64,000 nucleotides of DNA from Trichosphaerium sp. ATCC 40318. Lineage: Eukaryota > Protista > Tubulinea. The stretch covers positions 434,001 through 498,000 of the forward strand of contig JALMLS010000322.1 in the NCBI GenBank assembly GCA_038496445.1. Reading direction: 5' to 3'. The position numbers and the translations under genes were made by a program. Shown here one piece after another: positions 13,972 through 58,646 of this stretch. Below the pieces are notes generated by a model. That model was not told the origin of the DNA. It searched no databases and saw nothing but the letters and a program-made list of their open reading frames with translations. How positions within the stretch are numbered: position 1 is the first letter of the stretch; every line of letters starts with the position of its first letter.

Positions 13972-14022
13972 TTGCACGCTGGCGTTGCGGAACACTAAAA
14001 TTTTCCCTGCAATTAACGCGTT

Positions 14023-14094
14023 ATCCGCGTAGCTCAATGGTAGAGCGCTAGACTTCTAATCTAGAGGTTGTGGGTTCGATACCCATCGCGGATG
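14023..14094 (+). tRNA. tRNA-Arg(UCU), intronless
   Basis: ATCCGCG/CGCGGAT acceptor stem, GCTC/GAGC D-stem, CTAGA-CTTCTAA-TCTAG anticodon arm, GTGGG-TTCGATA-CCCAT T-arm. Confidence 0.95.
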
Positions 14095-14101
14095 AATGAT
14101 A

Positions 14102-35756: not shown

Positions 35757-36499
35757 TTAATGACCTTGAAACAATGCTCTACGCTTTGATGAGCTACTAC
35801 GTTGAACTGGCCTACAAGTGTTTGGATCTGGCAATGGAAAGTTGATTATGGCATCAAACTCTGAAAAAGCAGCAAATGGAAGAACGGGAAGATCAACCCC
35901 TTGAGAAAAAAAACCTGTAAACAACAGAAACAGTGGCAGTATAAAGTATTAAAACCCCTCACATGATAATGTTGGTATTAGGGACATCAATAGATACAGT
36001 ACCATCAATTGGTGATGCAACAGTTGATCCTATGAATGATAGAGTTAGCAACATTCCAAGTATTTTTTGTTTTTTGAGGTACCGACTACTGAGGCTGAGT
36101 CAAAAGTACAAACTAATCTTGTTAGTGAAGGAAAAGATCCAGGCTCCAAAACAATCTTGATGTTGATGCTTGTAGAATCAATATCAACAGTAAAGGTGGT
36201 CCGTTGCTCTAAAATGTCCTCCAAAAACCGAGTATACTCAACATCACCAGATTGCGGCGAATCAGCGTCAACTACAATGAAACCTGGAAAGGCTGGGCCT
36301 GCAGTAGCAGGCAACGAGAAAAGAGGTACATTTAAGGGTAGAGCAAAGAGCTGGCAATTGCCAGTATCGCCTTCTCCTGTAGTACATTATTTGTGTAATA
36401 TTGTTTAACTTGCGTTAGTTTCAACAAGTACGTACTAACTTGAGCAGCTACTGGAAGTGCTGTCGAAATGACCAATAAAAGTAGAGGTATGAGGTGCAT
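35757..36499 (-). CDS. Secreted variable-loop protein family, copy A (4 exons; last exon out of frame by +1 at A8 run 35906-35913)
   Basis: MHLIPLLLLVISTALPVAAQ signal; GEGDTGNCQL...GPAFPGFIVVDADS...GDVEY...TFTVDIDSTSINIKIV...TRLVCTF...SSKRRALFQGH*. Confidence 0.7.
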
Positions 36500-36832
36500 T
36501 CTTTTGCGTTGTAGTACGAAACTAAGATATTGAATGACATACAATACCGTCTTTCTTTGAGTTATGTCATGTGCACTGACTGCCAAAAAAATTTCTATTT
36601 ACATAAGACCACAGCGATACACCTTGAACGTAGACTGTGTAGGTCACACAATAAGAACTACTGTATACACTCTTGTATTTGAAGACTGTACATCCGCGTT
36701 TTGTTATTACGCTACCACAAATAATATTCTGTGTTGAAGAGGGCGCACATGCTCCCTACTCGATTAATCGGTTTTTGAGCCTTAAATAAGAATGTAGCTC
36801 AAAAAAATGAATACACCTTTCACGGTAAAGTT

Positions 36833-37082
36833 ATGTCTGTATATTCCATAGAATTCCAGGCGTTTGAGGAACTTTGCTGACCGACCAAATTTAAGGATTA
36901 TCATAGCATGACAAGCACAGAAACATTGATGGCAAGCAACGATCACCCCCTTCCCCGCCCAATCAAAGGCGAAGGAAGAGATAAACACTTACTCGTGTGT
37001 TGCGTTAGAGCCACCGAGACGTTAGTCTTCCTCCAAACCGGTCCTGTTCTCTCTGTTGTTCACAAAAGCCTTTTCATCTAAC
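36833..37082. repeat. Non-coding segment duplicated at 38440-38568 plus 39472-39575, where it is split by the tandem array
   Basis: gaattccaggcgtttgaggaactttgctgacc, atggcaagcaacgatcacccc and ataaacacttactcgtgtgttgcgttagagccaccgagacgttagtcttcctccaaacc each occur twice. Confidence 0.8.
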
Positions 37083-37858
37083 TTGAAATAAGAATTAGGA
37101 TTTCGAACTAAAATAGATTCATTCCTTTTTGAAGTCGAGCAGAACTCGTGAAAGCTACGTGTTTGATTCATCACTAGATAGCAATAAATAAAAACAGTAG
37201 CAAGTAAAAGTGTTTATTTCATAGTTTGCTACAGCGCACTGCCAAGTCTAAACTAAGCTCAATGGTTATTGCCATTAATAGCGTCTTTCTCTAGGATATA
37301 GCCTATATCTGCCCATACTCCGTACTAATGATTAACACTTACTGTACAGGTTCTGGTGACCTGATTGGGGCTATACAAGTGAATTCACGGTCACTGCAAA
37401 CTAGTATGGTACATTTTCTCCTTTTTTTTCTAATTTTGTTGACCATCTTTGAAATACCATCTTAAACTCTAGGCCATTGCTACCCATCATTAACGTACCA
37501 GAATCAAATCAAATTTTATAAACTCAGCACTATTTTGTAATATGAAAGGTGGCTACCTTGCTGTTATTTCGTCGTCAGAAGAGAACACTTTGTTAAAGCA
37601 ATAATATTTTTTTTAGCTTAGTTTGTACTACTTTTAATTTGAGTTACGGGAGTCTAACCCTCTTCTTAACCTTTTGTAATACCCTAATAGAACATTCTTA
37701 TACGGGCATTTGAATGAAATGCTTGACACTTACATGACAAAATAAGTGAGATATTATACTATAGTCGCGATACACTAGATTGCAAAGGATGGCAACATTA
37801 ACTAAAAGTCTCTTTATTCATGGTACATCACATAAAGCACCCACATCTGCACAATTGC

Positions 37859-38253
37859 TTATTTGCATTCATAGCGGCTTACATCTGAACTATGTCCAAC
37901 TTTCATAACACCGTGGTAATGATTACATCTTTCTGCGCTAGGTGTTCTCTTATTGCATCGTCTACACTTTCTCTTGCCTGATATGCTAGTGTACTATGGC
38001 GTATGTAAGTGAGAAAGATTACCTTTACTCATTTCTAAATACGTACTGATACGTAATCGCTGTCTGGGCACGTTCCCCATCTATCAGCACAGAAAGTTCC
38101 ACTATTGCCAATATCCTTTGTGTAGAGTTTTGAGCACCATTGGCCGGCGCATGCTTCTTCCTCTTCTTCGTTTCCTGTTACCGAAGTTGCGAATAAAAAA
38201 ACTACAAAGAGAACGGCCAGGGAGAGTGTAGGTATCGATGAAAAGGTGTTCAT
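37859..38253 (-). CDS. Small secreted cysteine-rich peptide (8 Cys), 2 exons
   Basis: MNTFSSIPTLSLAVLFVVFLFATSVTG-NEEEEEACAGQWCSKLYTKDIGNSGTFCADRWGTCPDSDYVS|YTSISGKRKCRRCNKRTPSAERCNHYHGVMKVGHSSDVSRYECK*. Confidence 0.72.
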
Positions 38254-38603
38254 GTTGGGTGAATTCAAATATTTAGGAAAACTGTTGCGAGTTTTCTTCG
38301 TTTTTCTAGAGTTTGTCCGATGAATCCCCGATTTCACATAACAAGGCCGCTGCGTTTTGTACAGTATACATGATAACATTAGTCAGCTTCTTAAACGTAG
38401 TGGTTTCTAAACACCAAAACGGTTCAGTTAATCCACACTATGTCTGTATATTCTCACGAATTCCAGGCGTTTGAGGAACTTTGCTGACCAACCTCACAAT
38501 CCTTAGATTACCAGATACTGGCAAGCACAGATAACTGATGGCAAGCAACGATCACCCCTTCCCCACCCAGAATGCCTTGGTATACTAAATAAATAACCCT
38601 GAT

Positions 38604-39360
38604 CCCCCCCTTACCAAATTCAATCAAACTCGAACGTTACTAAACCGCCAAACCTTGCTGCCAGAGCAAGGTTGTGTCTAACAGCAACTACTGTGTAATC
38701 ACAGGGACGCATTCAAAGGATATTGGTCACCAATCAATGTATTACGGCACCTTGAGTGCCAAGTGATCGAATCATGGGACATCTAAACCCTCTAGTCCCC
38801 CTTACCAAATTCAATCAAACTCAAACATGACTAAACCGCCAAACCTTGCTACCAGAGCAAGGTTGTGTCTAGTGATCAGTGTGTAATCATAGGGACACAC
38901 TCAAGGGATAATGGTTATCAATCAAGGTATTACGGCACCTCAAGTGCCAAGTGATTGAAAACTATGCTGGTAGAAAACCCTCTAGTACCCCTTACCAAAT
39001 TCAATCAAAATTCAAACGTGACTAAACCGCCAAACCTTGCTGCCAGAGCAAGGTTGTGTCTAGTGATCAGTGTGTAATAATAGGGACACACTCAAGGGAT
39101 AATAGTCATCAATCAATGTATACGGCACCTCGAGTGCCAAGTGATTGAAAACCATGGTGGTAGAAAACCCGCTAGTCCACCCTCCATAATTGAAAACTAT
39201 GGTAGTAGAAAACCCGCTAGTACCCTTACCAAAAAACTCATATGTAATCATAGGGACACACTCAAGGGATATTGGTCAGCAATCAAAGTATTACGGCACC
39301 TCGAGTGCCAAGTGATTGAAAACCATGGTGGTAGAAAACCCGCTAGTCCACCCTTACCCT
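38604..39360. repeat. Tandem array of ~190-bp units (3 full plus partial units)
   Basis: The ttaccaaattcaatcaaa anchor recurs at 38611, 38802 and 38992. Units share aaccttgct-5nt-agcaaggtt and ggcac-5nt-gtgcc hairpins. Confidence 0.9.
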
Positions 39361-39584
39361 TGAAAAAGGACAAACTTTTTCTGATCCTAAAAACTGAATT
39401 TATTGAGAAAACTGAATTTGAGGATCCATTTTTCCTGCATAAATACCACTTGTAAATGTATGTTCTAAGATATAAACACTTACTCGTGTGTTGCGTTAGA
39501 GCCACCGAGACGTTAGTCTTCCTCCAAACCAGTCTTGCTTACTCATACAGTTGCTCATAAAAGTGTTCATCTAACGCCACGAAG

Positions 39585-40582
39585 CACCACATTTCACGTT
39601 ACTTTGCACCCAATTATTTTTAGCTCTAACTACGTTTTTTGTACTCTACACAGTGGTGCACATACAAAGATCGTAGCTAGGTTTTTTTCCGTGGAGTTGT
39701 AACATAGTCACCCAAATGCGGTGGCTTAACAATTCTGTATCACACTATTTACAAAGGCCTTTATATGCTCCACCTCTATAAGTTACTAATTGAATACATG
39801 TATTTAACACTGACCCTGACATGAGAGCTAACTTTGAACAGCTTTTGGTTGAAACAAACTTAGCAGCCGTGAAACTAGTGAAAAATGCCTTTCAAGAGAT
39901 TATAGGCGTATACACCAATATTATGCTTGTACACGCAAAAATGCCATAGTTTATCATTTTGTTTAAGGTGGTTGTGTACGACATGCTGTCTATGATAATA
40001 TACTATCACGCTACAGTAATTCATCCGCATGCACAAAAGAAAAAAACACAAACTTGATTTTACACTTTCCAAAATAAGAAAACCATACGTTTTAACCTAC
40101 ACCACAATGTTGAAATGAACTTCATTATTGTTTTACAACATATATAGTTTGTTTTAGCAGATTATAACCAAAATGTAAGCTTTAAACTGATTCTTCAAAA
40201 ACTCAAATACCCTTAACCTACTTACAATTATGTGGTGGTAGTTTTAAGACAGGTTGGGCAAAGCGCAGATGCTATGTAATGGAGGAAAAAAAACCCACAA
40301 AATATGCGAAATTTACACTTCAAAACTCACTGATTAAAGCCATATTCATATCAATGCGCCCCCATTTATAGTTGCAGTAAACCTAGAAGTATTTGAACCA
40401 AAACAGAACGTCAAATCAAGACACAAAGCCTTGCTTAAGATTTTGCCTACCAATTTCCAAAAACCAAAAAGACAACGTATTAAAACCTAAATACGATCTT
40501 TGTATGTGCACCACTGTGTAGAGTACAAAAAACGTAGTTAGAGCTAAAAATAATTGGGTGCAAAGTAACGTGAAATGTGGTG
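39585..40582. mobile_element. Non-autonomous DNA transposon (MITE-like), 998 bp, perfect 91-bp TIRs, 3-bp TSD AAG, CAC...GTG termini (CMC/CACTA-Chapaev-like)
   Basis: 39585-39675 is the exact reverse complement of 40492-40582. Flanks are aag|caccac and gtggtg|aag. No transposase ORF inside. Confidence 0.88.
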
Positions 40583-41945
40583 AAGTCAAAAAATTAATAA
40601 TTAGGGTTTTTAGCGGTTCACGTTGGTGCTGATGTCCGATGAATCCAGTATCACGTGACTAGTTTATGTATTGATCTAAGCCAGGTTTTGCCAAGGTATA
40701 GTTTACGAACTCCACTCCTTGATTGTACAAGGGGCGAGTAAACAAACATCAAAAAACTTAATGAAAACCTAAAGGTGAGTCTTATTTTTTACAGCTTTGT
40801 CCTGACGTTCATCTCAATCCTCTTTTTTCCATGTTTGTTACCTATTCACTTTGGGTCTAAACCATCTACATACCAACTAGTCGCTACAAGCTCAAACCGC
40901 TTCGTTAACATCTCTAGGTTCATCGGAAGTGTACGAAGGTGCAAGAAACAGTACTCACTACTCATACATTTAGGTTGACAATAAGGTGTTATCTAGGTCG
41001 TAAGCAGTAATACCAATGTCTCATAACTTAAAGCAGTCGCAAACCCTTAAGGCACTGCTTCCTTAAATGAATTATCAACCAGAGCCGTACCCTATCAATA
41101 ATGTTAGTTTTGAGAGTTGTGTCATAGGCAAACTAGGAGATGTCAATTTTCAAACTGTACGTGCAGATGTAAATTTAGTGATGTTAAATGACTGCAATCA
41201 GTCATGACTGACTTTAACTGAGTTGCTCGAATTTCGCTGACATTAAAGTGCTTGGTGATGTACTTTTCCTAGTTTTTTCTGAAATTGAGCCAATTCAAGT
41301 TGCTTGCAGTTGATGCCAAAAATTTTGACTTGATACAAGTTTTAGCCCTGTGCTTTGGTTGGCTTAAACCGCTGTATGTTAATAAAACTGTGGTACCTCT
41401 AGTTGTGGGTTCAAGTCTTTCGTGTTGCATCTGTTAGATGTGACATATCCTATTAAATATAAACCCCGAAGAATAGGTAAATGATATATCTGTTCCAGGA
41501 TACGGATTTCTCATAAGGGGATTTGTCCACTTCATACAGCCCTTGTACATACATGAAGAAGTCTCCCGAAACCGCTGTGGTTGTTGCCTGGGTTTTCCAC
41601 CCTTATTTGATTGTTTAATGACCGAGTCGATGTGTTGCAAAAGTAGTGTATACACGAAAACAGTTACCCAAAAATTGTGGGTCTTAAATGTAGCCACAGA
41701 CAACAAACTAATATTCATTCATTCAATAGAGCAGTGATGCTGAACAGGATAAAAGTATTAAACAGTAATTAGTCATTGAACACACTCAAGAACAATGACA
41801 GGAGAGGCTACAATACTAGAAAAACTGAAGGTTGTCAATAAACAACCTACACAAAGTAATTGGCGGTGTACATGAAATTGTTTTGAGAAACTTAAATATA
41901 CAGATGAATGTTTGAAAGGCCTTGGCAGGTGCGAGCTTTTATTTT

Positions 41946-42670
41946 TTAATGACCTTGAAACAATGCTCTACGCTTTGATGAACTACTACGTCGAACTGGT
42001 CTACAAGCGTTTGGATCTGGTGGTGGAAAGTTGATTATGGCATCAAACTCTGCAAAAAAATCAAGTGGAAAAGTAGGAAGATCAACCCTTGAAAACCTGT
42101 AAACAACAGAAACGGTGGCATTACAAAGTATTAAAACCCGTACTCAATAACACCCGGATCAGGAATAGCAATAGATACAGTACCATCAGTTGGTGATACA
42201 AGAGTCGATCCTATGAATGGATAGAGTTAGCATCATTCGAGTTATTTTTTGTTATTCAGGTACCAACTACTGAGGCTGAGTCGAAAGTACAAACTAATCT
42301 TGTTAGTGAAGTACGCCCTGTACGCTCCAAAACAATCTTGATGTTGATGCTTGTAGAATCAATATCAACAATAAAGGTGGTCCGTCCCACATCCACTACA
42401 ACTTCCTGAATATACTCAACATCACCAGATTGTGGCAAATCAGCGTCAACTACAATGAAACCTGGAAAGGCTGGGCCTGTAGTATCAGGCGACGAGAAAA
42501 GAGGCATATTTGATGGTAGAGCAAAGAGCTGGCAATTGCCAGTATCGCCTTCTCCTGTGGTACATTATTTAGGTTTTAACTTGCGTTAGTTTCAACAAGT
42601 ACGTACTAACTTGAGCAGCTACAAGAAGTGCTGTCGAAATGACCAATAAAAGTAGAGGTATGAGGTGCAT
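41946..42670 (-). CDS. Secreted variable-loop protein family, copy B (intact, 4 exons)
   Basis: Same signal peptide, framework and intron positions as copy A; ends ...PDPNACRPVRRSSSSKRRALFQGH*. Confidence 0.78.
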
Positions 42671-43844
42671 TCTTTTGTGTTGTAGTAAAAAAACTAAATT
42701 GTTGACCGACACATACCAATCAATACTGTCTTTATTTGAATCATGTCATATGCCTACCACTTTCTTTTATTCCCAATTAACAGACACGTTTTTTTGTTAT
42801 TACGCCTAATATATTCTGGAATAAGGGCGCACATAGTCCTACTGTTATCACGCATTTTCGGGTTTTACTGTAAATAATCTGTAGCCAGATTATGTAGGCA
42901 TCCACATAGGCTCAATGGCTTTAACATATACATTAAAAGACGTCTATGGAATAAGAAAGCATAAGATGGTGCTGTAAGCTCAAAAAAAATTATTTAGTAA
43001 ATTACATTTTGCTGTCTAAACAGGAAAGTAACAATTTTTAAAGCATGTGCGTCCTTTTGTGATGCCTAAGTATCATAGAACGCGTGAATAGCTTATGTGG
43101 AAACTGAAATTATGCACAGAACAGCGTTTTTTGGTTCAAAAAGTGGATTGCTCACTAAAAACCAGTTTAATACTCTAAAAAATATTCCCTACGCGTAGGG
43201 TATGTGTGCACATTAAAATACGCTATTTGAATCAAAAATGCAATAACAAGTCAAAACGTCATCTAACCTCATCGATACTGTGCTATATGCTTCTTTTAGC
43301 TGTGTTCTTCTTGATGTACCTGTTCGCTGTTTGGACCGCTCTGCCCTAGCCGTTTATTTGGGTTTTACGAAAAATTCTACCTTTAGAAAACTTGTACATT
43401 TTTAGCTTTTGGCACTTAACATCAATTTCAATAAATCTCATTCAACTCCCACATTTGAGGCACTTTATTGTTAGGTACTTTTCAAATAATAACCTAAGTG
43501 GCTATTAACTACAACCATTGACACCTACGCAAAGCTCAAGAAAACATAAATGATAAAGTGTGTAATTAGGAAGACTTAGCTAACAATACTTAAAAAAGCC
43601 ACAAAATTAAACTATGTTTTAGACTCATTATGGACTACATCACTATTGGTGAATACTCAATACTCTTAACAGGCTGTTCACAGTATTTATGACTACTATT
43701 TCCTGAAGTGTCAATCCTTAAAAACTATTTTCAAGAACGAACAGAAGTTGCAAGATCTGACTAAACACTAAAACCAAAAGTCACAAACAGCAAAAAGTTG
43801 CAAACTTGAATGATACGGACAATAGTACATTAGATTTTAATTTG

Positions 43845-44070
43845 TGTTAGTATAAACAAGTACGTACTAACTTGAGCAGCTACTGGAAGTGCTGTCGAAA
43901 TGACCAATAAAAGTAGAGGTAGGAGGTACGTTCTTTTGTGTTGTAGTAAAAAACTAAATTGTTGACCAACATCACGTTTTTTTTTGTTAACACGCCAAAT
44001 ATAGTCTGGAATAAGGCGCACACAACCCTACTGTTATCAAGCATTTTCGGTTTTGCTGTAAATAATCTAA
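43845..44070 (-). pseudogene. Relic of the variable-loop family: upstream region plus exon 1, start codon mutated (ATGCAC to ACGTAC), truncated in intron 1
   Basis: Encodes ...LLPLLLLVISTALPVAAQV; upstream sequence matches 42680-42880; no downstream exons. Confidence 0.7.
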
Positions 44071-44320
44071 GCTCAAAAAAACTGAACATGAACACGAAGA
44101 TATTCAGCTAATGATCCGAGACTCAACGGGTTAGCCGTGTGAGTCCGAGATGTAACGCTATATAGCGACCTATAACTTATGTGCCAAACCTCTAGAGGAA
44201 GCAATGTGTGTCATTCAAAGTATATGTCCTCTGTCTTTAAAGTTGTACGACTATAAATACCTTGATAGCCGTACTCATCAACAACCTGAAATAGTGTAAA
44301 CCCAAATATCAGTTTTATTT

Positions 44321-45225
44321 TTAACGGCCTTGAAGTAATGCTCTACGCTTTGATGAAATACTACGTTGAATTGGCACACAAGCGTTTGGGTCAGGTGGTA
44401 TCGGTGCCAGTGGAAAGTTGATTGCAACATTAAACTCTGAATCACCCTCAGGTATACTTGGTAAAATCACCCTTGAAAGAACGTGTAAACAACAAAATAA
44501 CTGGGCGATTGAGGGATTCACCGCTACAGGATAAGACACTCATTTTCACTTAAATGTTTGGGTTATTGTGTGATGACAATACAAAAAATGGGTCGCATCC
44601 TGCAGCGGGACACCTAACAAAAAAGTGCAGGATATCTCAATGGAAAAATAAAAACCCATACGCAATAATATCCGGAGTAGGGACACCAAATAATACAGTA
44701 CCATCAGTTGGTGATACGAGAGTCGATCCTATGAATGAAATAGTTAGCAACAGGAGTGATAGAGTAAGCAAAAACCGAGTGTAATTCTTGAAAAGAAGTG
44801 CTTATTTATACCCAGTATAAACCCAGCCCTAAAAGTACAACCTAATCTTGTAGGTGCAAGTCCTATATTTTCGGAAACAATCTTGATGTTAATGCCTGTA
44901 GTATCAATATCAATAGTAAAGGTTCTTCTTCCAAATGGTTCTGGAGCTGGACGTTCTTCTATCCAAGTATACTCAACATCACCAGATTCTGGCGAATCAG
45001 CGTCAACTACAGCGAAACCTGGAAAGGCGGGGCCTGTAGTCATCCCAATCATCCCGAAAACAGGCACAATACCATCAATAAGAACAAGTTCGCATTCGCC
45101 ATGATCACCTTCGCCTGAAGTATTTTAGGTTTTAACTTTAGCTTGTAAAACAAGCACGTGCTAATTTGAGCGGCTATTGGAACTGCTATCAAAATAACCA
45201 ATAAAAGTAGAGGTATGAGGTGCAT
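44321..45225 (-). CDS. Secreted variable-loop protein family, copy C (GC-AG intron 1, enlarged intron 3)
   Basis: MHLIPLLLLVILIAVPIAAQI|GEGDHGECELV...GDVEYTWIEERPAPEPFGRRTFTIDIDTTGINIKIV...PDPNACVPIQRSISSKRRALLQGR*. Confidence 0.72.
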
Positions 45226-45363
45226 GCTTTATGCTGTAGTAAGAAAACTGAGCGGTGTTCACTTAAAACTTTGTAATCTCGCGCAAGTCTGAAAGCGACA
45301 AGCATTGACCTTTAAGCAGCTTATTCTCCCTCGCAACTATTCTCTACTATCATGCCTTCGAAT

Positions 45364-46493: not shown

Positions 46494-47222
46494 TTTTATG
46501 CTCGTCTAATGTGTTGTCTTTAGCAACGGTGAACATCTATTTAAATGTTATGCATTTATTTAAATAAAACGAAGGTGAATGAGTCAGCTAGTACTGAGAA
46601 GATTACACTTTAGGCACTTAGTAGTATCACAGTCACCCGTACAACGGGTTGTACTACAAATTCTGATTGTTTACGGAACCATTGAAATGTACGTGAGTGG
46701 TAGTGATTGCGTCACTAGCGAAGGTTTAAACGATAGGTGAAAGTTGTATGATAAGAATACAGGAAGTCTTTAATATGTCCGAGACCACACGTGATTTCAT
46801 TTTCAGCAAATAATTCTAAACATCAGAAAAAACTGCTAAATACCCTAAAATGCGATAATTCGTATAAACAAACGTTATTTGTACATTTATTTCTTTTCAC
46901 TGTAAATTGGAAATACGCTTTTATTTATACCCAAATAACGCTATCAAGACATTGTATGGTTGCCTTGTGTTACGGTAGTTCCAATTACAGATTACGAGAT
47001 ATAAAGGTAAAAACCGGAAAGATGTGGTAAGGAGCACTCTAACTGCTGTACCAACCTGTTTCGCGAAAAATTAAGAAACAGACTCAGCGTTTCGTTTTTT
47101 CATCAAATGGTTCTTATTACATTCCCCTTGCATAACTTTATCGCGCTTAAATTGGATTGCGAAAAGGGCGTACAAATTTGTGCACACGTGTGCATATCTT
47201 ACAAAGTTTTCACAGTTTGGCA

Positions 47223-50200
47223 ATGTCTCAGCTTATATTGCTCTATTTTAGTGCCTTGTTTATTCTCTCCGCGTTTGCTGTCCGTATAGACACTTTTGAC
47301 GTGTTTTCAGAAGCCTCTACAAACTCCCCAACTCCAGTTGTCGTAACCACTATCAATGATACAATCTTTGGTGGAAGGCGTGATATGACAGCTTTGAGAC
47401 TGTTTGGCGATATTAGCGCTTTGGAACTATCATGTAGTGTAGTTAATGGTCTCTTTGCCATGAACACTGATGTGTCAGTCGTTGGCACGTGTTCTGTCGC
47501 CTATGCTGGAATATCTGGCGCTGGGTTTACGACACCTTTAAACTTACTTCAAAATGGTTGCAGTACGTATTACTTCATAACCTACCAACGTTTTTATTTT
47601 CTCTTAAAACTCGTTTTAGGTTGTTGGAACTTTCACGTTTTGGAATCAGACAACGATGTCGAATTAGTTGCAACTTTCCGTAATTCTATTACAAACCAAA
47701 GTATCGCTCTATTCCACACATTGGCACTTGATATCACCAATCCTACGGATGTTTGTATTCCATACGGAAGTGCTCAAAATGCATTGACATCAGTCAATAG
47801 AGCCGAATACACCTTAGCAAGTGTAACAGCTAATGTTGACATTGTTAGTAGCTATTCTTGTTGCCAACCAATTGTTTCTTGTTGGTACTATCTTCACTCT
47901 TTTCTAAGCGTTTCAATATTAACACGTGATATTTAGGCATACTATCACAGCTAGGCCACAAAGAGAGCTTAACTATTTGAATATTGGGGATGACATAGAT
48001 ATTTCGTTGACTTGTATCAATTACCCATCATTTCCAGCTACAGAAGAATCAATTGTTGGTTTGTTGCCTTTTGATGCTTCAGTTGGATCAGTACAAATAA
48101 GAAGTATTGCTTGTATAGGTGTAATATCGTTCGGTGTGATAAACAATGGGCTTACATTTACCGCACTACTTGGCGAAAACCAAACAGCCAGTTGCTCTCT
48201 TACCATAACAATGCAATCACCAGGTCAAGTCAACAACCTAGGCGCCTATATCACTACTGGAGCTCAAGAGAATCCTCCAATTCGTTCCAATGAAGGTGTT
48301 CCACTGTACGTTCCCTAATTTTCACAAGATTTCACCTATTGAAAAATCTAAACTGTTTTATTGATTTTATTCGACGCTGTTCTTAAGATTTAATATACCA
48401 CATAGCCATGGCACTCCAGCTTTCTGTGATCCACCTAAATTGTCATCGGTCATTGTCCTTGCTCCTCCTCAAATACCAACGAATGCGCCTTTCCCACCAC
48501 CAACAGAGCCACCAACAAACGCTCCAGTATTTGTCTCCTCTCCAACGAATGCACCATTTCCTCCACCAACAGAACCACCAACGAATGCACCAGTATTTGT
48601 CTCATCGCCAACAAACGCTCCATTCCCACCTCCAACAAAGCCACCAACAAACGCTCCAGTACCAAACGCACCAGTTTCCCCACCAACGTTTGTACCTATT
48701 ATAGACCCTTTTGAAGTGTTTGGATCATCTGATGCCTCATCAACAACACCTAATACAACAAGCGTTCTGGACAACACTATTTTTGGTGGGCGACGTGATA
48801 TCACAGCTGCTAAAACCGTTGTCAGTAATCCTCTTTTAGAGCTATCATGCAATGTGCAGGCGGGATTCTTTTCCATTAATGCCGATGTATCAGTGGTAGG
48901 TAAGTGCACTCTTACCTATGCTGGACCAGATGGAACTGGGTTCCCAATGCCACTGACCTTACTTCAAAATGGATGCAGTATGTAGAACCTTATGTAGGTT
49001 CTTTTCTTTACCTTCTGTTTCAGGTTGTTGGAACTTTCACGTTTTTGAAGCAGACAGCAATGTTAACATATCGGCAACTTTCCGCAATTCAATTACAAGC
49101 CAAAATGTCATCCTCTTGCATATATTGGAGGTTGATATCAGTTCTCCTATTGACGTTTGTATCCCGTACTCAACTCAAGCAGATGGATTGGCATCCATTG
49201 ATCGTGCCGAATACTCCACAGAAGCCTCTGTAGCTAATGTTGACCTGAGCATTGGCCATGCTTGCTGTCAACCAATCGTTTCTTGTTGGTACTACCCTTA
49301 ACCCTTTTGTAACCATTCAATGTTAACACGTGATATTTCAGGCATACCATCACTGCCGAAGGAGGGAAAGATTTAAATAATTTGGCTGTTGGTGACTCCA
49401 TCGACGTTTTGGTGACATGTAGAAATTACCTATCACTTCCAGCTACAACAGAGGAGATTGTTGTATTTTTCCCTTTTGATCTTTCAATTGGTTCAATGCA
49501 AGCAGGAACTGTGAGTTGTACAGGCCCAATAGTGACTCAATGCAGTGTCGTGGTGAATGTACTACGACTAAATGCAGTACTTGGAGAAGACCAAGTTGCA
49601 ACTGCCTCCGTCAGAATAACAATGCAATCACCAGGTCAAGTCAATAACCTAGGCGCCTTTATCACTACCGCAGCTGAAGAAGAACCTCCAATTCGCTCCA
49701 ATGAAGGTGTTCCACTGTACGTTCCTCTTTTTTTTGTACTTATTATAATAGTCACGTGACTTATACCTATATAGCCAAGGCACACCAGCTTTTTGTGATG
49801 CACCAAACCTCTCATCACTCACAGTTCTTGACCCTCAAGCACCTACAAACGCACCAATAGCTCTTCCACCAACTAATGCTCCGTTTGCACCTCCAACAGA
49901 ACCTCCAACAAATGCTCCAGTATTTGTAGCAACACCAACAAATGCACCAGTTCCACCACCAACAGAACCACCTACAAACGCTCCAGTATTTGTAGCAACA
50001 CCAACAAATGCACCAGTTCCTCCTCCAACAGAACCACCTACAAATGCTCCTGTACAAACAATGGCACCAACAAATGCACCACTACCATTTTCTCCAACAA
50101 ACGCGCCAGTTCCTCCACCAACAGAGCCACCAACGAACGCACCATTCCCGTCACCAACAAATGCACCAACAAATGCGCCAGTTCAGACGTTACCTCCAAC

Positions 50201-51104
50201 TAATGCTCCAGTTTTCTCTCCTACAAATGCACCATTACCATTCCCTCCACCAACGAATGCTCCATTTGCTACACCTCCAACAGATGCTCCAGCTTGCAGT
50301 CCATTCACTCTTGCCGAAGGTGTATTCCCAACTGGTACCTTCATGCTTGAGGATCGTTTTGGACCTGATTCGCCTCCAACATACTGTTTCAGACTTGATG
50401 TTCCTGGTCAGGTACGAACAAAAAATTGTTGAACCTCTTGTTTATTCTACAACTTGTTGTTGATTTTCTTTACTAGCAACAATTAGTTACATTGACATGT
50501 ATTGCCGGAGGAATGAGAGTCTCAGTTGATGCTGCTTCACGTACAATAACAGTTGCTGGTATAGTGAGTGGAGGACTTGATATTGGAGATACAAGACAAA
50601 GCAATACACTTGCATCCATCCAAATTATCTTTGAGTACGCTGTCATCTTCCTTTTAGACAACTACAAGAAAATGCATCTTCTTAACATCTCTTTAGTGAA
50701 GTCAACGTTGTTGGTATAGCTCCTAACTTTGCACTCTCAACAAGCTCTCTTTCACAAGGACTTATCTTTTTTGATGTACAGTTATCATTGGAAACTTCCC
50801 ATTTTTAATCTTGTTTTCCTTTTAGGGCGTATTATACCAAACGTCAGCACTTGGAATGAGAGTCTTTGAGCCGCCAGGTTCTGGTATCTTCTTTTTAGCG
50901 TAAGTAAAGATTTTATTTGTTTGAAGAATAAGACAGCTGTCTTCTCTGAACTGGATCCAACCACTTGTTTTTGTTTTGCTTTTTTTGTTTACTTCTAACT
51001 TTGGTTTCAATAGTGGTTTATTCAATAGATTTCCTGTACAGTCTCCAACTGAAATATTACCTACCACACTCTCAGGAAGGATTGGAGAATGTTTAGTTAA
51101 TTAA
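47223..51104 (+). CDS. Large secreted modular glycoprotein: duplicated two-domain module, Pro/Thr (PTNAP) mucin-like linkers, distinct C-terminal domain
   Basis: Signal peptide MSQLILLYFSALFILSAFA. Two copies of IDxFxVF...TIFGGRRD...LLQNGC|WNFHV...CCQPIVSCW|...MQSPGQVNNLGA.ITT...PPIRSNEGVP with the same intron positions. Stop TAA at 51102-51104. Confidence 0.78.
48465..48690 (+). repeat. Coding PT/PTNAP repeat tract 1
   Basis: PTNAPFPPPTEPPTNAPVFVSS units. Confidence 0.85.
49838..50292 (+). repeat. Coding PT/PTNAP repeat tract 2
   Basis: PTNAPVFVATPTNAPVPPPTEP units. Confidence 0.85.
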
Positions 51105-51399
51105 TAAACAACACCATATTTTCCAACTTTCGTTTTTGATAATATTGCAATGACCTGAATTTTCTCAATTGAAGTTGTGAATGAGCGTGGTGTTGTGTAA
51201 ACTAGTTGAAGATATTAGCAGCAGTGCTTTATTGTAAGTTTACAACCTAATGGTATTAATGCCGGCCAATAATAAAGCTTCATCTTATTCCTTTACCTGT
51301 GAAAGTGTAATGGCATGAACGCCAGCTCTCAGTAAATTGATCATAGATACAACATATTTGTAACAATCAGTTGACAGACGGACTGTGCGATGTACAAGC

Positions 51400-51404
51400 A
51401 AAAA
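51400..51404 (-). terminator. Pol III oligo-T terminator of tRNA-Cys
   Basis: T5 on the minus strand 5 nt after the discriminator. Confidence 0.65.
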
Positions 51405-51409
51405 CCGCT

Positions 51410-51482
51410 AGGGTGCTCCGGGAATCGAACCCGGGTCCTGGCGCACTGCAACCGCCTGCGATTCCGTCTTCGCCAAACACCC
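51410..51482 (-). tRNA. tRNA-Cys(GCA) with G31:G39 mismatch
   Basis: Minus strand reads GGGTGTT-TG-GCGA-AGACGGAA-TCGC-A-GGCGG-TTGCAGT-GCGCC-AGGAC-CCGGG-TTCGATT-CCCGG-AGCACCC-T. U73 discriminator is typical of Cys. Confidence 0.85.
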
Positions 51483-51811
51483 GACTTAAGTATATCGCTC
51501 AAGATGATATTGTCAATGTTATCTATACGGGCTGGTATTTCAGTCAATAGCTCACAGGAGGATCAAAAACAAACATAACAAACTATGACAACAGAATACA
51601 GGATATGAATGAGTTTGTTCAGGCAATTATGCGTGTGACTTTAGTTGTCTTTGTCAAAAGAAAGTAACAGTACAACAACAACTTTAAATTTATGATGTAG
51701 GATGTATCCTATCTATAATTATGCCACAATACCTTTTTGTGTAACTCAAGTATCAACAACGGGTGAACACCACCAAGAGCACACTTGAGACCACTTTACA
51801 AAACAAAGAAA

Positions 51812-53276
51812 TCAGGTTCCTTTTGTGTAATAAAGGTTTGCTCCATCACCCATCCGAACAATTTTAGTTTGCCAAACTTTTTCACCATTCCAATTCACCA
51901 TCTCAAAACATCTGGGTTTTTCCTTCATGTAGGGATGACCCTTTGATTTCACAATTAATATACCATGAAAAGAGCGAACATCAACACCAATAGAATGAGA
52001 ATCCCTCCAGCGATTACCTAAAGCAGATGTGTATGTCCATTTCTTTTTTCCATCACTATCGACCAAACATACCACTGCTGCCTTAGCACCAAAACAACCA
52101 GAATACGTAAGTATGTTTCCACCTTCAAGCAATAGAATGCTAGTCGTGTGGTATTGCATTCTCAATTTCCATTCAAGCCTTAACACCATTGTTTTAAGTG
52201 AGAAACAATAAAGTACATCAGAAGCGAAGTACACTTTATCATTTAAACACTCAAAACCAGTGCACTTGTTGGGTACATTCAAAATAATCTCTCTTGATTT
52301 GATGTCATAGATTGTGGTAGTTCTGTGGGTATAACCAATTGCTCCTGATATAGCTATAAGGTTCTCACTAGCAAAGAGCCGTAAATCACCCATTGTTGGT
52401 ATATCTTTGTTTGATAAGATATTGCCTTGGAAAAGCCTTAGCCATTTAGTTTAATAATAATAAGTTTTACCTGTAGATAAACTCAAGTAAACCAGTTTAC
52501 AAACAGAAGAGTTATTGTTTCCATTCTTAGCAAGGCAAAACAGAATATCCTTGCTGTAAGCCAGCCAAGAGTACATGAGATACATTGTTGTACTCCATTT
52601 TGCCTGACCAGTTTTTTCATCAATGCCGATTATTTTGTTTGTACTTGCCACTACGAGAACATCACTGGTAAATAAATGCGTTACGTAGTTTGGGAGATGG
52701 TAATGAGAAGGCCACAAGTGGTTACCGTCATATGTTTGGAGCATCAAGTGAGTGTCAGAACGATCATCTTTTGGTGTGAAGGAAACAAATCGTGGTTGAC
52801 ATCGTGACCCAAATAGAGGTTTGATTTCTTTTGAACCAGTATATTGATACCCCGTGGTGATATTAAATTTAAAGTTGTACTCCTCTAAGCAAATGGGTGC
52901 CTGTAACGAAACGAAGTTAAACAAGAAAACTTTACTGTTTTTCTCTGCAAACGGAGAAACTATGAGCACGTGGGCTAATTTTTTTTTATCAACGCACGTT
53001 TTGTTTGTACTCAATAAATGAAGCGAAATAAACTACATCTTTCCATGAAGAAGTGTTCAGTATATCGACAGGCCAACGGCTCTTCGGACCCCAATGAAGC
53101 GTATTTTGCCATTTCTTTTTAAAAAGATACCACAAAGTCTTGTAGTTTCGTAGTAATGATGAAATGGCAAGGTTTGTACTTGATAAATACAATATCGTTT
53201 GAAAACTCTCACATGCACCACAGACCATATACAGAGTATCAATTGCGCAAAGAACAGCGTCTACAGGGGTAGACAT
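51812..53276 (-). CDS. F-box-like N-terminus plus PQQ/BamB-like beta-propeller protein (spliced)
   Basis: Three consecutive ORFs. Helical N-terminus followed by ...LWYLFKKKW...SWKDV, then repeated xDxxTGxxKW blades (GIDEKTGQAKWS, VDSDGKKKWT, VNWNGEKVWQ). Confidence 0.55.
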
Positions 53277-53682
53277 GTGTATAAGATTGTTGCCACTATT
53301 GTGTATTTCGGTCAAGATTGTGTCATTTGTAGTGAAAACTCACAGAAAATTCGTCTTAATGGCCTATGGCTTTAAACAAAGCTTCAAAACACAAGCCAAT
53401 ACTGCCACACATAAACGGCTTACAGAGTGGAACCTGTTCAGTTGTAGCCGAAAAAGACCGATAATGGATTTAAAAAAAGAAGAATAACTGTTACAGTTAT
53501 TCTGTAAAGTGAGCTGTAAGTTGACATCTGGTCTTATTTGCCACAATCGAAGGGCAAACCCAACAACTAGAAGCGAAATTATGAGCCGCAAAAATAAATG
53601 GAACTCTAATTTGAATTGCGTGGACTTTAACATCACGATACTAGAAATTCAATCTTTCACAGTGGCAGTATAAATTAATCAA

Positions 53683-55132
53683 ATGTACACAAGTGAGCGT
53701 AAAAGTATTGAGGTTGGTACAGAACTTATTGTATGTTAGTTACATTCCAGGGAGAAAGCAAAGCAACAAGAATAGTATCTGAGAAAACAATATCGCTGAT
53801 ACCACTTCTTAACAACCAACTATCCCTTTTAAACGACTCTCAGGAGTTCGTACTTGAATCTGGTATTACTCAAGTATCCCTGTTACAAGACGACTCAACA
53901 GAGCTTGTACTCAAACCTGGAGTAAATTTTAACGAAAAAGATGTGCTGAGTACGCTTTGTCGCTCAAAACAAGCTTACAGCAATTCTTATCATCAATTGC
54001 AGATATAATCGACATGATTGAATCGAAACGAACATTAGACAGCTTTACACCAACAGAGTTGAAGTCATCTTGTGCTGCAGCTGATTGGCTTGGATGTGAG
54101 GTGCATTTTAACCGATAAAAATAGTTTCATGTGGTAACGTGAATTTAAATAGGACATTTACAAGTCTTTTTTGTTGAGAAGAGCGATGAACGGTGATGTT
54201 GACTCTGAGTTATCATTGGGCTGTGCCAAGGTTGACATCAAGGACATTGATTACAGCCGCACTTCTGTTTTTGCTATGATGGATCACTGGCCTGTTCCTA
54301 AAATGCTTAACATTGTTGGTATGTGTGCAACCAAAGGTTTAACAACAAACCACTAACAGTTTTAAAGTCGAACTCTTCTGTTTCAAAGAAACAAAGCCAA
54401 CATCAACACTACTACGTGTTCTTCATAAAGCATCTCTATTGAAGCACTATAAGCAATATCCTAAGAAGTGCAGTATAATTGCTGAAAGAGCATTCGAAAT
54501 GGTTTATAATAGAAATACTGGAAGGATCAGATACGAATGGGCTACAAATAAAATGAAAAATATCTATTGTAATGTTATACAGGACAAATTTGCATATACT
54601 AAATTGGCAAACACTACAAGAAGAACGATTGTCAAGGTTATTTTTTATTTTGGTGAAGAATTTGTGAACAAGTTCTTTGATAAGGCGATTACTTTTGCAT
54701 TGACAGTAGAAACTAGCATCGTTTCAATGCGTGCAAAAGTATGCTTATCATTTATGACACAGCATAAAATAGCTTCAGGAACTATCTCCTTCTACTCTGG
54801 AAGACCATTACATCATGTGCAACAAACTTACTCAATCCTCTCAATGAATCTATCACAGTGATTTTGATTGTATCTCTCAGGGTAGAAGGAGATAATGTAA
54901 TAGTCCATCATGATAGCGATATAATTGTTTTTTATCACGTGATTTCAAATCGCCATTTTCAGAGCTTTTGTGTTTACTGACATCTTTAAAGGTTGAAGTT
55001 TGTGTTTATGCTGCCAAGGATGCTGGTGCAATTACTAATATTATGAAGCATGTATTTACTAAGAGAGAACTCGTTGCTTCTATACCGAACACATGCAAGT
55101 TCTTATCTACCTTAATAGTTGACCCTAACTGA
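53683..55132 (+). CDS. BTB/POZ (Skp1-like) domain-containing protein, spliced
   Basis: TISLIPLLNNQL... and LKSSCAAADWLGC resemble BTB/Skp1 helices (L..AADYL); multi-exon to ...LIVDPN*. Confidence 0.45.
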
Positions 55133-55690
55133 CCCACTACATTCATGTTACTATTCACTGTTGTGACTGTACAAACTATCTACAATAAACATGAGATGCC
55201 GCTTTTTAATACATTGTAACGGGAGCTGGTTGAACCAAGCCCATCACGTGCCACGAAAATTGCAAAAGGTTTTTCCATACTGATCACACCTTAAAAATCT
55301 AGTGGGTTTTAGAATTCTCATTCGAGTTTTCATTTTGATGTAATTTTCTTAAAGTACCGCTGCGTTCACATTGCACAATGTAAATACAGATTTTGGCAGT
55401 TCTTGCTGAACAACAATTTTTCTACCTTCTTCACTATAAGTAGCTTTCTTGGTGAAGAATCCCATTTTCAGTATTAATGGAGAAAAAGGTGTCTAGATCT
55501 TTATATTCTGAAAAAGTACCAACTACTCCCAAATCTCAAACGTACTCTGAGTGTTCTTGTTTTCTCACATGTGTATTATAGCCTGGTTTTACAATATGTA
55601 CGATTTTGCCTACAAAGTACTGCTTGTTAACATTTCAACATGTACAAATCTCGCTTCCTTATGCAGTATTAAGTTTCTACTACATACAGC

Positions 55691-56430
55691 ATGCACCTAC
55701 TGTCTCTAATCTTATTGGCTATTTTGACAGCAGTTCTAGTAGCCGCTCAAATTAGTACGTACTTGTAGTACAGTAGCAAGTTAAGGTAACAATTTACAAC
55801 AGCTGAAGGCGATACTGGCAATTGTCAGCTCTTTCTTCTACCTGATAATGTGGCCGTTTTTGGGCTGCTTGGGATGACTACAGGCCCCAACTTTCCAGAC
55901 TTTGTTGTACTTGACGCTGATTCGACAGACCCTGGTACTCCGGATGTTGAATATAATTTGAGAGTGGAGTCAGACTTGCAAAGAATAACCTTTACTATTG
56001 ATATTGATACTACAGGCATCAACATCAAGGTTGTGTTTGAAAATATCGAAAACAGCAGATTTGTAGCTACAAGATTAGCTTGTACTTTTGGTGCTGGTGG
56101 GGTAGAGGGTACAAAATAGCCGCTTTCTATAAGAACACCTTGACTGTTACTAACCCTTTCATTCATAGGATCAACTGTTGTATCACCAACTGATGGTACT
56201 GTATCTATTGCTATTCCTGCTCCGAACATGATTGAGTACGGGTTTTGTAATGACACTGTTCTGTTGTTTACAGGTTCTTTTTAAGGGTGGCAATACCTGA
56301 AATATCTAGTAGTGCTTTTTCAGAGTTTGATGTTGTAATCAAGTTTGCACTGGCACCTACTTGTATACCAGTTCCAGATAGTATTTTATCAAGTCGTAAA
56401 GCATTACTTCGAGGTTATACAAAACAATAA
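55691..56430 (+). CDS. Secreted variable-loop protein family, copy D
   Basis: MHLLSLILLAILTAVLVAAQI|..EGDTGNCQL...PDVEYNLRVESDLQRITFTIDIDTTGINIKVV...SSRKALLRGYTKQ*; 3 introns at the shared positions. Confidence 0.78.
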
Positions 56431-56628
56431 AAGTTGCTCTTTGAATTAGCAACCAAATTAAGCTCCGTCAACAAGCAAGGAATGAATACGATAGCAACCA
56501 GACAACGCCACCCACTCCGGCCGGAAACGTTTCTTTTTACCAATCTTTATTGTCTTTTTCAAAACAAAAGTTTCTTTGCACTCAACCTTGGATTGATAAA
56601 CCACATACTCACTCCAGGAGTGACTTGT

Positions 56629-56900
56629 TCAGGGTAGAAGGAGATAATGTAATAGTCCAGATGGCGATATTATTGTTTTTTATCATGTGATTATCACATG
56701 ACAGAGCTTTTGTGTTTCCACCTTTTTAAAGGTTGAAGTTTGTGTTTATGCTGCCAAGGATGCTGGTGCAATTACTAATATTATGAAGCATGTATTTAAA
56801 GAAGGAACTAATTGCTTCTATACCGAAATACGTACAAATTCTTGCCTACCTTAGCTGACCGCAACTACATCTACGTTATTGTACGATTCTACAATAAACA
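56629..56900 (+). pseudogene. Duplicated 3' fragment of the 53683-55132 gene, carried with the D/E tandem duplication
   Basis: Matches 54877-55190 (ggttgaagtttgtgtttatgctgccaaggatgctggtgc...) but has indels and no upstream exons. Confidence 0.7.
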
Positions 56901-57906
56901 ACAGATACAGTATTCAGTACATTGATACAATGTGTACATTGTTGTGAACTGGCTAGCAACTACTACAGTTGATACTAAAGGAGGTTGGTGACTTAACATA
57001 AAGTCAACAACCTAGAGGTGTAAGCAACGGCTAGCTACGCAATGCCAATGTGCTCGAAATTTTTTGCTGCGACTATACTATCAATCAAGGGTCTCAGGCC
57101 TCGTGACCAAGCCAACAGAGGTCCTCCAATTGGTGCTATTGTTTGTACAAGCCAATGAAAGATAGAAGTTTAACGGTATACAAAGCAGTGACTATCATGG
57201 TAGTTTTAAATGGCACGTGATTAGTATTGTATTGCACTTTTTGACTGTTGGTTTTCGAGTTTTGTCAGATCTGCCAGTTCTATAAATTCTGTTAGTTAGT
57301 ACAAGATCTGACAATTTGCTAGAAATAGCAGATCCAACTTTTGAAAAATGAACCACCATGAGTGGATTTAGAATTCTCATTAGGGGTTTCATGTTTATAC
57401 TCCTCTCGCCACTACAATTGTGCCACACTAGCATGTGGAGGCGGTCCAATAAATAATTTGTATTCGCTCCCAAATTGTCTAGTTCGCTCCTTTGGGCTCT
57501 TTTGTGGTGAAGTATTTACAAGCGCACAGTAAAGTACTTCAATCCGGAGTTTGTAATTTTTCTTAAAGTACCGCTGCGTTCACATTGCACAATGTAAATA
57601 CAGATTTTGGCAGTTCTTGCTGAACAACTATTTTTCTACCTTCTTCACGAAGTTGCTTCCTTGTAAAGAATCGCATTTTCGGTATTAACGGAGAAAAAGG
57701 TGTCTAGATCTTTCTTTTCTGAAAAACTACCAACTACTCCCAAATCTCAAACGTACTCTGAGTGTTCTTGTTTTCTCACAGGTGTATCATAGCCTGGTTT
57801 TACAATATACGATATTGTCTACAAAGTACTGCTTGAAGTTTTACATTTCAATCTGTACAAATCTCCCTTCCTTATGCAAATAGTAAGCTTCTTACTACTA
57901 CAAAGC

Positions 57907-58646
57907 ATGCACCTCCTACCTTTGCTTTTATTGGGTATTTTGACAGCGATTCCAGTTGGCGGTCAAGTTAGTACGTGCTTGTTTTACATTTGCAATAATT
58001 AAAACCTAATAATGTACTACAGCTGAAGGAGATAATGGCGATTGTCAACTCTTTGTTCTAGATAATAATCAGCCTATTTTTGGGGCGTTTGGGACAACTA
58101 CAGGCCCAAACTTTCCAGACTTTGTTGTACTTGACGCTGATTCGACAGACCCTGGTACTCCGGATGTTGAGTATACTTTTATAGTAGAGACTCCACCACT
58201 TGGAAGCCTAACCTTCACTATTGATATTGATACTACAGGCATCAACATCAAGATTGTTTTTGAAAATAACGGATTGGTATCTACAAGATTAGCTTGTACT
58301 TTTGGTGCTGGCGTGGTAGAGGGTCAGCTGCTCTTCAAAAGAATAACTCGACTGTTACTAACCCTTTCATTCATAGGATCAACTATTGTATCACCAACTG
58401 ATGGTACTGTATCTATTGCTATTCCTGCTCCGAACATGATTGAGTACGAGTTTGTAATAACACCGTTCTGTTGTTTACAAGTTCTTTTTAAGGGTGATAA
58501 TACCTGAAATACCAGTTAGTCCTTCTTTAGAATTTGAAGCTGTAATCACCTTTCCGCTGGCACCTGATCCAAACACTTGTATACCAGTTCCAGATAGTAT
58601 TTCATCAAGTCGTAAAGCATTACTTCGAGGTTATAAAAAACAATAA
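57907..58646 (+). CDS. Secreted variable-loop protein family, copy E
   Basis: MHLLPLLLLGILTAIPVGGQV|..EGDNGDCQL...PDVEYTFIVETPPLGSLTFTIDIDTTGINIKIV...SSRKALLRGYKKQ*; about 350 bp of upstream sequence is shared with copy D. Confidence 0.78.

Follow-up and report, generated by a model that had tools for sequence, protein, structure and literature searches.

Why should gene copies that have kept nearly the same framework differ sharply, and always in the same few short segments? The question is raised by a 64 kb stretch of the Trichosphaerium sp. ATCC 40318 genome (contig JALMLS010000322.1, positions 434,001 to 498,000; hereafter the window), in which five paralogous genes, A to E, encode small proteins with a signal-like peptide. 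The first-pass annotation of the window had read them as a fixed scaffold with block-replaced loops resembling complementarity-determining regions (CDRs), and as a candidate recognition or antigenic-variation system. We find that four short segments gain amino-acid changes faster than neutral markers, repeatedly in independent duplicates, and that in three of the four this has happened by selected point substitution and not by the import of blocks. The genes form a new, lineage-restricted orphan family of secreted (signal-peptide-bearing), β-rich proteins that has been tandemly duplicated. The family is new; the evolutionary pattern is one already known.

Five copies with one gene architecture

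A DNA repeat search, a five-way DNA alignment and tblastn agree on the five paralogues, which lie where they had first been placed, A, B and C on the minus strand and D and E on the plus strand. The gene models given here were rebuilt from the five-copy alignment. The variable segments are termed L0 (after the first Cys), L1 (after the VEY motif), L2 (after INIK(I/V)V) and L4 (the start of exon 4).

35757..36499, minus strand: copy A, frame-broken; exons 36499-36436, 36376-36083, 36029-35963, 35899-35757; L0 36303-36344, L1 36195-36233, L2 36120-36149
41946..42670, minus strand: copy B, intact, 187 residues; exons 42670-42607, 42554-42264, 42210-42144, 42087-41946; L0 42481-42522, L1 42376-42411, L2 42301-42330, L4 42051-42086
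43836-43972, minus strand: relic, comprising exon 1, the greater part of intron 1 and about 40 nt of the DNA upstream (repeat search and alignment)
44321..45225, minus strand: copy C, intact, 194 residues; exons 45225-45162 (GC donor), 45114-44812, 44728-44662, 44471-44321; L0 45038-45082, L1 44921-44968, L2 44849-44875, L4 44438-44470
55340..55690, plus strand: region upstream of D, which matches its counterpart before E (about 57555-57906) at about 90% identity
55691..56430, plus strand: copy D, intact, 193 residues; exons 55691-55754, 55803-56108, 56169-56235, 56286-56430; L0 55835-55879, L1 55955-55990, L2 56036-56071, L4 56287-56322
57907..58646, plus strand: copy E, intact, 194 residues; exons 57907-57970, 58023-58322, 58377-58443, 58493-58646; L0 58055-58099, L1 58175-58213, L2 58259-58285, L4 58494-58529

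Each gene consists of four exons (64, about 291-306, 67 and about 142-154 nt) separated by three short introns, whose positions and phases (1, 1, 2) are the same in all copies. Most donors resemble GTACGT, and branch sites resembling CTAAC are found near the acceptor. Intron 1 of copy C is of the GC-AG type, and its introns 2 and 3 are enlarged to 83 and 190 nt (intron 3 measures 49-63 nt in the other copies). The shared intron positions had been recognized from the outset, but two boundaries needed correction: intron 1 is in phase 1 with a GTACGT donor, and the acceptor of intron 3 lies 9-15 nt further downstream. The resulting splice model is supported by P0001, a transcript from MMETSP, a survey of marine microbial eukaryotes, since this sequence aligns without gaps over all three predicted exon junctions.

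Copies B, C, D and E have a frame that is open from ATG to stop and have kept all of their splice signals. Copy A does not belong with them, and the description of five full-length genes therefore holds for four. Spliced at the conserved sites, copy A loses its frame where exon 3 joins exon 4 and runs into a stop two codons on; the frame can be held open only by using non-homologous splice sites, with the loss of at least 13 conserved residues. The break may be a true pseudogene lesion or an assembly error, and it was entered as X or NNN throughout all analyses. The area of the break (35899-35963, minus strand) is a stretch with short homopolymer runs. The relic noticed at first reading is present: aligned to the 5′ ends of A and B, its exon 1 has lost the start codon (ACG) and its homology stops after most of intron 1.

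The two young pairs, A/B and D/E, carry most of the argument below. Over the whole gene, exon identity is 87% for A/B and 86-88% for exons 2 and 4 of D/E. 'Almost identical', as the pairs had been described, is thus a fair term for the framework DNA, which differs by 2-5% per codon position in A/B and by 4-10% in D/E, and too strong for the exons as a whole. The loops of the same pairs differ by 20-50% and change in length, as had been seen, and the loop peptides then quoted are correct. The flanking DNA said to be shared amounts in D/E to about 350 nt upstream at about 90% identity (93% in the repeat-search match), whereas A/B are similar over only about 60-100 nt upstream and a short downstream patch. 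The D/E upstream region has diverged less than exon 1 and intron 1 of that pair and is presumably a shared promoter/5′ untranslated region.

Positive selection on four short segments

Whole coding sequences compared in pairs by the Nei-Gojobori method give ratios of nonsynonymous to synonymous change (ω) of 0.69-0.95. Goldman-Yang site models were then fitted with our own implementation (F3x4) on the tree ((A,B),C,(D,E)), which came out best among the five topologies compared; comparisons of the M1a/M2a and M7/M8 types are standard tests for positively selected sites (PMC10127084). M2a is strongly preferred to M1a (likelihood-ratio test statistic, LRT, 35.2; p=2e-8), with about 11% of codons at an ω of 7.1, and the comparison of M7 with M8, which had been proposed as a check on the first reading, gives an LRT of 38.7. 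The M1a/M2a result persists when all gapped columns are dropped (LRT 39), when columns within two codons of a gap are dropped (21, p=2e-5), when copy A is masked (32), with exon 2 alone (27.9) and with L1 and a patch in exon 3 of copy A removed (27). In 24 data sets simulated under the fitted M1a null model the LRT was at most 6.4, so that the signal is not a product of our code. The sites with a posterior above 0.95 fall in L0, L1, L2 and L4.

The young pairs allow a comparison that needs neither a tree nor a post hoc partition of the alignment. Amino-acid differences between A and B fall preferentially on the columns at which D and E also differ (odds ratio 4.9, p=2.7e-4). In these recurrent columns the nonsynonymous difference (pN) is 0.28 in both pairs, against a synonymous difference (pS) of 0.12; outside them pN is about 0.075 and pS 0.13-0.15. 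The introns provide a second neutral yardstick, and the comparison of loops with introns, which could have undone the claim of diversifying selection, favours it: the recurrent-column pN exceeds the intron divergence of A/B (0.094, p=4e-4) and, marginally, that of D/E (0.172, p=0.06). At greater depth, when the A/B clade is compared with the D/E clade, identity is 68-73% in exons 2 and 4 and 71-91% in the three introns, the exons being the more diverged. The proposal of strong diversifying selection, here concentrated in a few short segments between predicted strands, is thereby borne out, in independent pairs.

Point substitution or imported blocks?

We may ask at this stage by what kind of change the segments diverge, block replacement having been the original reading. 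Within each of the two young pairs, L0, L2 and L4 differ by 25-53% at the first and second codon positions and by only 8-14% at the third. Framework third positions are 5-10% diverged, and the third positions of the loops match the divergence of framework and introns. In L2 of A/B, for example, five consecutive codons have changed and four of the five third bases have been kept. An imported block would have randomized third positions together with the others; since they stand at background, the changes in L0, L2 and L4 are of the kind that selected point substitutions leave, and the same grounds exclude that these loops simply mutate faster than their surroundings. The independently chosen columns agree, as their pS is not raised (0.12 versus 0.13-0.15). 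An earlier partition of our own into loop and framework, in which loop pS appeared to be raised, was set aside as circular, having been drawn from the same data; the independent-pair partition and the codon-position test took its place.

Donors for the loops were sought in the 64 kb window with blastn-short, using every loop of every copy, and only chance matches of 9-13 nt were returned. Moreover, the loop peptides keep residue patterns across the copies and P0001 (T-x-hydrophobic-x-E in L1, x-E-x-x-G/x-L in L2), which argues that the loops are homologous and have not been replaced.

The claim of block replacement survives in part, for L1 and at the scale of exons. L1 has in-frame indels in both young pairs, and its third positions (45-50% diverged) are as diverged as positions 1 and 2; this loop and the exon 3 patch of copy A may have been shaped by the turnover of segments or by repeated indels. 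Paralogues have demonstrably exchanged sequence at the scale of exons. Exon 1 and intron 1 of D/E are 75% identical beside a 330-nt flank at 90.6% (p=8e-5), identity in exon 3 and intron 3 of D/E reaches 95.7%, compared with 85.9% over the remainder of the gene (p=0.0025), and exon 3 of B resembles D/E (88%) more closely than A (75%).

The window lends no support to a system of programmed diversification: it contains four intact genes and neither cassettes, a template repeat nor an immunoglobulin signature. For a diversity-generating retroelement in particular, no template repeat, that is, no second copy of a loop region, is found in the window, reverse transcriptase not having been scanned for. 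On present evidence the locus reveals no new mechanism for generating diversity. It does provide, once codon positions are viewed separately, a clean example of how selected point substitution can be told from block replacement.

A probably secreted orphan family

The precursor has about 190 residues and the mature part about 165-170. As read from the sequence, the N terminus of every copy is a hydrophobic, signal-like peptide, M-H-L-[IL]-x-L-[IL]-L-L ... A-A-Q, and the mature part has exactly three Cys, the first two about 91 residues apart; signal peptide, intron positions and Cys number are common to all copies, just as they had been listed at first. Invariant motifs run along the mature part: EGDxGxC, GPxFPxF, DAD, VEY, F-T/I-[IV]-D-I-D-x-T-x-I-N-I-K, T-R-L-x-C-T-F, G-S-T-x-x-S-P-x-D-G-T-V, E-F and, at the C terminus, a basic tail that includes a dibasic site. 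Also conserved are the acidic turns (DAD..., DIDxTG). The tail motif, ...SKR.ALFQGH, is conserved between this genome and P0005, a second MMETSP transcript, despite a whole-protein identity to the window copies of about 49-56%, and must therefore be under strong constraint.

Searches for relatives returned little. Pfam has no matching family, whether exon 2 of D and E is searched with E values allowed up to 10 or P0001 with a cutoff of 0.01. When 1.84 billion representative proteins were searched exhaustively with phmmer, P0001 (186 residues, 53% identity over exon 2) was the sole credible relative, and it was again the only one when 5.8 billion clustered proteins were searched by word index, both with P0001 itself and with a profile of the family. 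A metagenome scan with two conserved peptide patterns produced 121 pattern matches and no confirmed relative; a profile search of the PDB gave nothing below E 0.48. The initial remark that the proteins belong to no recognized family was thus well founded. P0001 and P0005 are 97% identical and, both being MMETSP transcripts, tell us that the gene is expressed in a relative. Their differences are almost confined to the last nine residues, and it is P0005, not P0001, that keeps the ALFQGH tail of A and B. The two may be alleles, or a change of frame at the 3′ end may set them apart. In a protein tree the five window copies group together with P0001 as the outgroup, and since P0001 falls outside all five, the expansion is lineage-specific.

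Three bacterial repeat proteins (P0002-P0004) matched by phmmer at E 5.5e-8 to 7.3e-4 were rejected as spurious. They carry SdrD-B, Calx-beta or galactose-binding-like domains, calcium-binding β-sandwiches to which the acidic turns (DADS..., DIDxTG) bear a likeness, and language-model features also point toward PPC and galactose-binding-like clusters. However, profile-profile comparison failed (hhalign probability 0.3% and 7.4% against the matched repeats), the phmmer matches come from adding up, over many repeats, short stretches rich in D, T and G, and none of the Pfam models of these domains matches the family.

A predicted β-sandwich

AlphaFold2 was run twice on P0001, with and without the signal peptide, from an alignment whose 12 rows come from only seven family members; exon 3 fragments were misplaced by MAFFT and were left out of this alignment. 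Run 1 gave a mean predicted local distance difference (pLDDT) score of 56.8 and a predicted template-modelling (pTM) score of 0.50, and run 2 gave 56.5 and 0.48. Both models, of low confidence, are all-β with about nine strands in the same places, so that the protein is probably a nine-stranded all-β sandwich with three Cys. Together with the signal-like peptide, these models lend support to the notion of a secreted β-rich scaffold with which the first-pass annotation had started.

Set on these low-confidence models, 17 of the 18 candidate sites (posterior >0.5) lie outside the predicted strands (p=9e-4), which suggests that the variable segments are exposed loops. Tentatively, L0, L1 and L2 would join strands 1-2, 3-4 and 5-6, and would thus lie at one end of an up-and-down sheet, with the conserved acidic turns (DAD..., DIDxTG) at the opposite end. 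Shape searches with the models gave nothing above noise: Foldseek against the PDB stayed at E of at least 0.2 and against AFDB clusters at a template-modelling (TM) score of at most 0.35, the best score of VIA-align wide was Z 6.2 (the tool's stated noise is 7-8), and an ESM Atlas search reached a TM score of at most 0.44. At best, the predicted fold could be called a generic β-sandwich.

Comparison with known systems

The closest described phenomenon is the accelerated evolution of venom toxin genes, including the switching of segments termed 'ASSET' (PMC7285919). Here too, tandem paralogues encode small, presumably secreted proteins containing Cys, introns and flanks are conserved as well as or better than the mature coding exons, and nonsynonymous change stands at or above synonymous change. 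Change is likewise focused on what would be surface segments of a fixed fold, in a subset of sites whose nonsynonymous differences exceed the neutral rate against a conserved framework and conserved introns, and one segment (L1) may have been switched. On the other hand, the protein family and fold are unrelated and the organism is a microbial eukaryote; the signal-peptide exon of D/E is not the best conserved part of the gene, and the loops are mostly point-substituted and not segment-switched. Nothing points to a toxin as the product here.

Filamentous plant pathogens, both fungi and oomycetes, have lineage-specific clusters of small secreted candidate effectors under diversifying selection. 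The window copies share with them the signal peptide, small size, few Cys, absence of homologues beyond close relatives, tandem duplication accompanied by pseudogenes, and positive selection on the mature part. They differ from them in that no translocation motif such as RXLR-dEER follows the signal peptide, and in that their sole relative is known from a transcript collected in a survey of marine microbial eukaryotes.

With immunoglobulin V-type domains the proteins would share a predicted β-sandwich with variable residues in alternate inter-strand loops. Structural alignment to the V-set is weak (Z 4-5 from low-confidence query models, below the tool's noise of 7-8), there is no sequence or profile match in Pfam or the PDB, and the three Cys, the spacing of about 91 residues and the missing invariant Trp do not readily fit a fold defined by the B-F disulfide and a core Trp; in addition, the diversity seen here is germline and paralogous, not somatic. 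Antigenic-variation systems differ in another respect, as donor cassettes are absent from the window and the sole relic comprises exon 1 only. The labels 'CDR-like' and 'antigenic-variation system' claim more than these observations allow: four intact genes, no diversification machinery and no immunoglobulin signature are what the window offers.

How the family may have evolved

Our preferred reading, to which we give a probability of roughly 0.6, is that of a lineage-restricted secreted family whose loops have been reshaped by positive selection after duplication and may bind a fast-changing extracellular partner. Tandem duplication has produced a family of small secreted proteins, in which the β-strand framework, the introns and the tail would be held by purifying selection, and the four inter-strand segments L0, L1, L2 and L4 would have been reshaped again and again by positive selection for amino-acid change. 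The raw material would be ordinary germline change, namely point substitutions, small in-frame indels and an occasional exon-sized exchange between paralogues, and not a programmed generator of diversity, somatic or cassette-based. The loops may then form a binding surface for the partner, for example a molecule of prey, host, competitor or pathogen, and the gene copies could be alternative specificities maintained by an arms race.

Several points weigh against this reading. There are only five sequences, one of them broken, and the site posteriors are naive empirical Bayes values from our own code, not from codeml or HyPhy. Recombination and variation in the synonymous rate can inflate site-model tests (PMC6526913). 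Exchange between paralogues did occur here, and the exon-wise and loop-excluded fits lower the risk of inflation without removing it. In L1 and in the exon 3 patch of copy A the synonymous positions are also highly diverged, which makes ω uncertain there. With a pLDDT of about 57 and a pTM of about 0.5, the assignment of loops and their shared face are tentative, and the partner molecule is pure inference.

The alternative that survives best, though we consider it rather unlikely, keeps the same evolutionary mechanism and changes the partner. The loops would serve self/non-self or mating (gamete) recognition, the partner being conspecific and the selection balancing or sexual. The selection evidence fits this equally well, textbook examples of positive selection include the proteins of gamete recognition and allorecognition, the odd number of Cys could permit covalent pairing, and a lineage-specific family with a species-specific expansion would be in keeping with it. 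Against it, neither a transmembrane or anchor segment nor an adjacent partner gene is evident, and allelic polymorphism, which defines allorecognition loci, is not informed by the divergence of paralogues.

Quite unlikely, in our judgement, is a bolder reading, that of a germline-encoded recognition repertoire of the protist, in which a β-sandwich binder, one end of it bearing three or four CDR-like loops, exists in many copies scattered through the genome. These would be diversified by duplication, positive selection and patchwise exchange and would discriminate prey, pathogens or kin. If true, it would represent an independently evolved, antibody-like binding scaffold in a protist.

We give very little credence to a repertoire diversified by segmental conversion, in which the loops, in the manner of antigenic variation or CDRs, would be replaced as blocks from genomic donors, possibly with exclusive expression. 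The indels and third positions of L1 and the significant mosaic identities in D/E and in exon 3 of B are what it would lead us to expect; the third positions of L0, L2 and L4, the pS of the independently chosen columns, the shared residue patterns of the loops and the failure to find a donor in the window speak against it, as does a window with just four intact genes and with no recombination signal or machinery seen.

Equally hard to uphold is decay under relaxed constraint, with the loops as unconstrained linkers and a selection signal arising from misalignment, recombination or multi-nucleotide mutations: it would account for the broken copy A, the relic, whole-gene ω values near 0.7-0.95, the indels in L1 and L2 and the exchange between paralogues, but not for four copies with open frames and splice signals, a framework and tail strongly conserved even against the MMETSP relative, a recurrent-column pN above both pS and the A/B introns (marginally so for D/E), or a test that behaves as expected in null simulation and stays significant more than two codons from gaps, in a single exon, with A masked and without L1.

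To return to our preferred reading, undescribed secreted families with clear positive selection point to molecules by which little-studied protists meet other organisms; beyond animals, plants and the pathogens of both, few interaction proteins of this kind have been described. The family described here is tractable both for structure determination and for fishing for partners, being small, with a defined framework, four mutable loops and one expressed marine relative.

Surroundings of the cluster

The window is eukaryotic DNA of about 37% G+C. The other features identified in it are as follows.

7017-7580, minus strand: nitroreductase-like open reading frame (Pfam E 5e-14)
14022-14095, plus strand: tRNA-Arg(TCT)
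17147-17977, minus strand: MORN-repeat open reading frame (Pfam E 1e-20)
24326-24736, plus strand: exon of an SNF2-family helicase (Pfam E 7.5e-36)
51410-51482, minus strand: tRNA-Cys(GCA), inside the cluster region, between C and D

Also between C and D, at 47157-50500 on the plus strand, lies a second signal-peptide-bearing gene or tandem pair of genes with repeated modules of about 330 residues (motif IFGGRRD...LELSC...VSVVG.C). The modules are split by Pro/Thr-rich PTNAP linkers, which are encoded by 66-nt repeats (48409-48731 and 49802-50124). The open reading frame pieces tested from this gene gave no Pfam match; its presence fits a region rich in extracellular proteins.

Two repeat structures are located between A and B. 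About four tandem units of approximately 190 nt occupy 38595-39352, each with a hairpin AACCTTGC-N-GCAAGGTT. Further on, 39585-39692 and 40475-40582 form a 108-nt inverted repeat, 95% complementary and with its arms 782 nt apart, which may represent the terminal repeats of a small transposable element.

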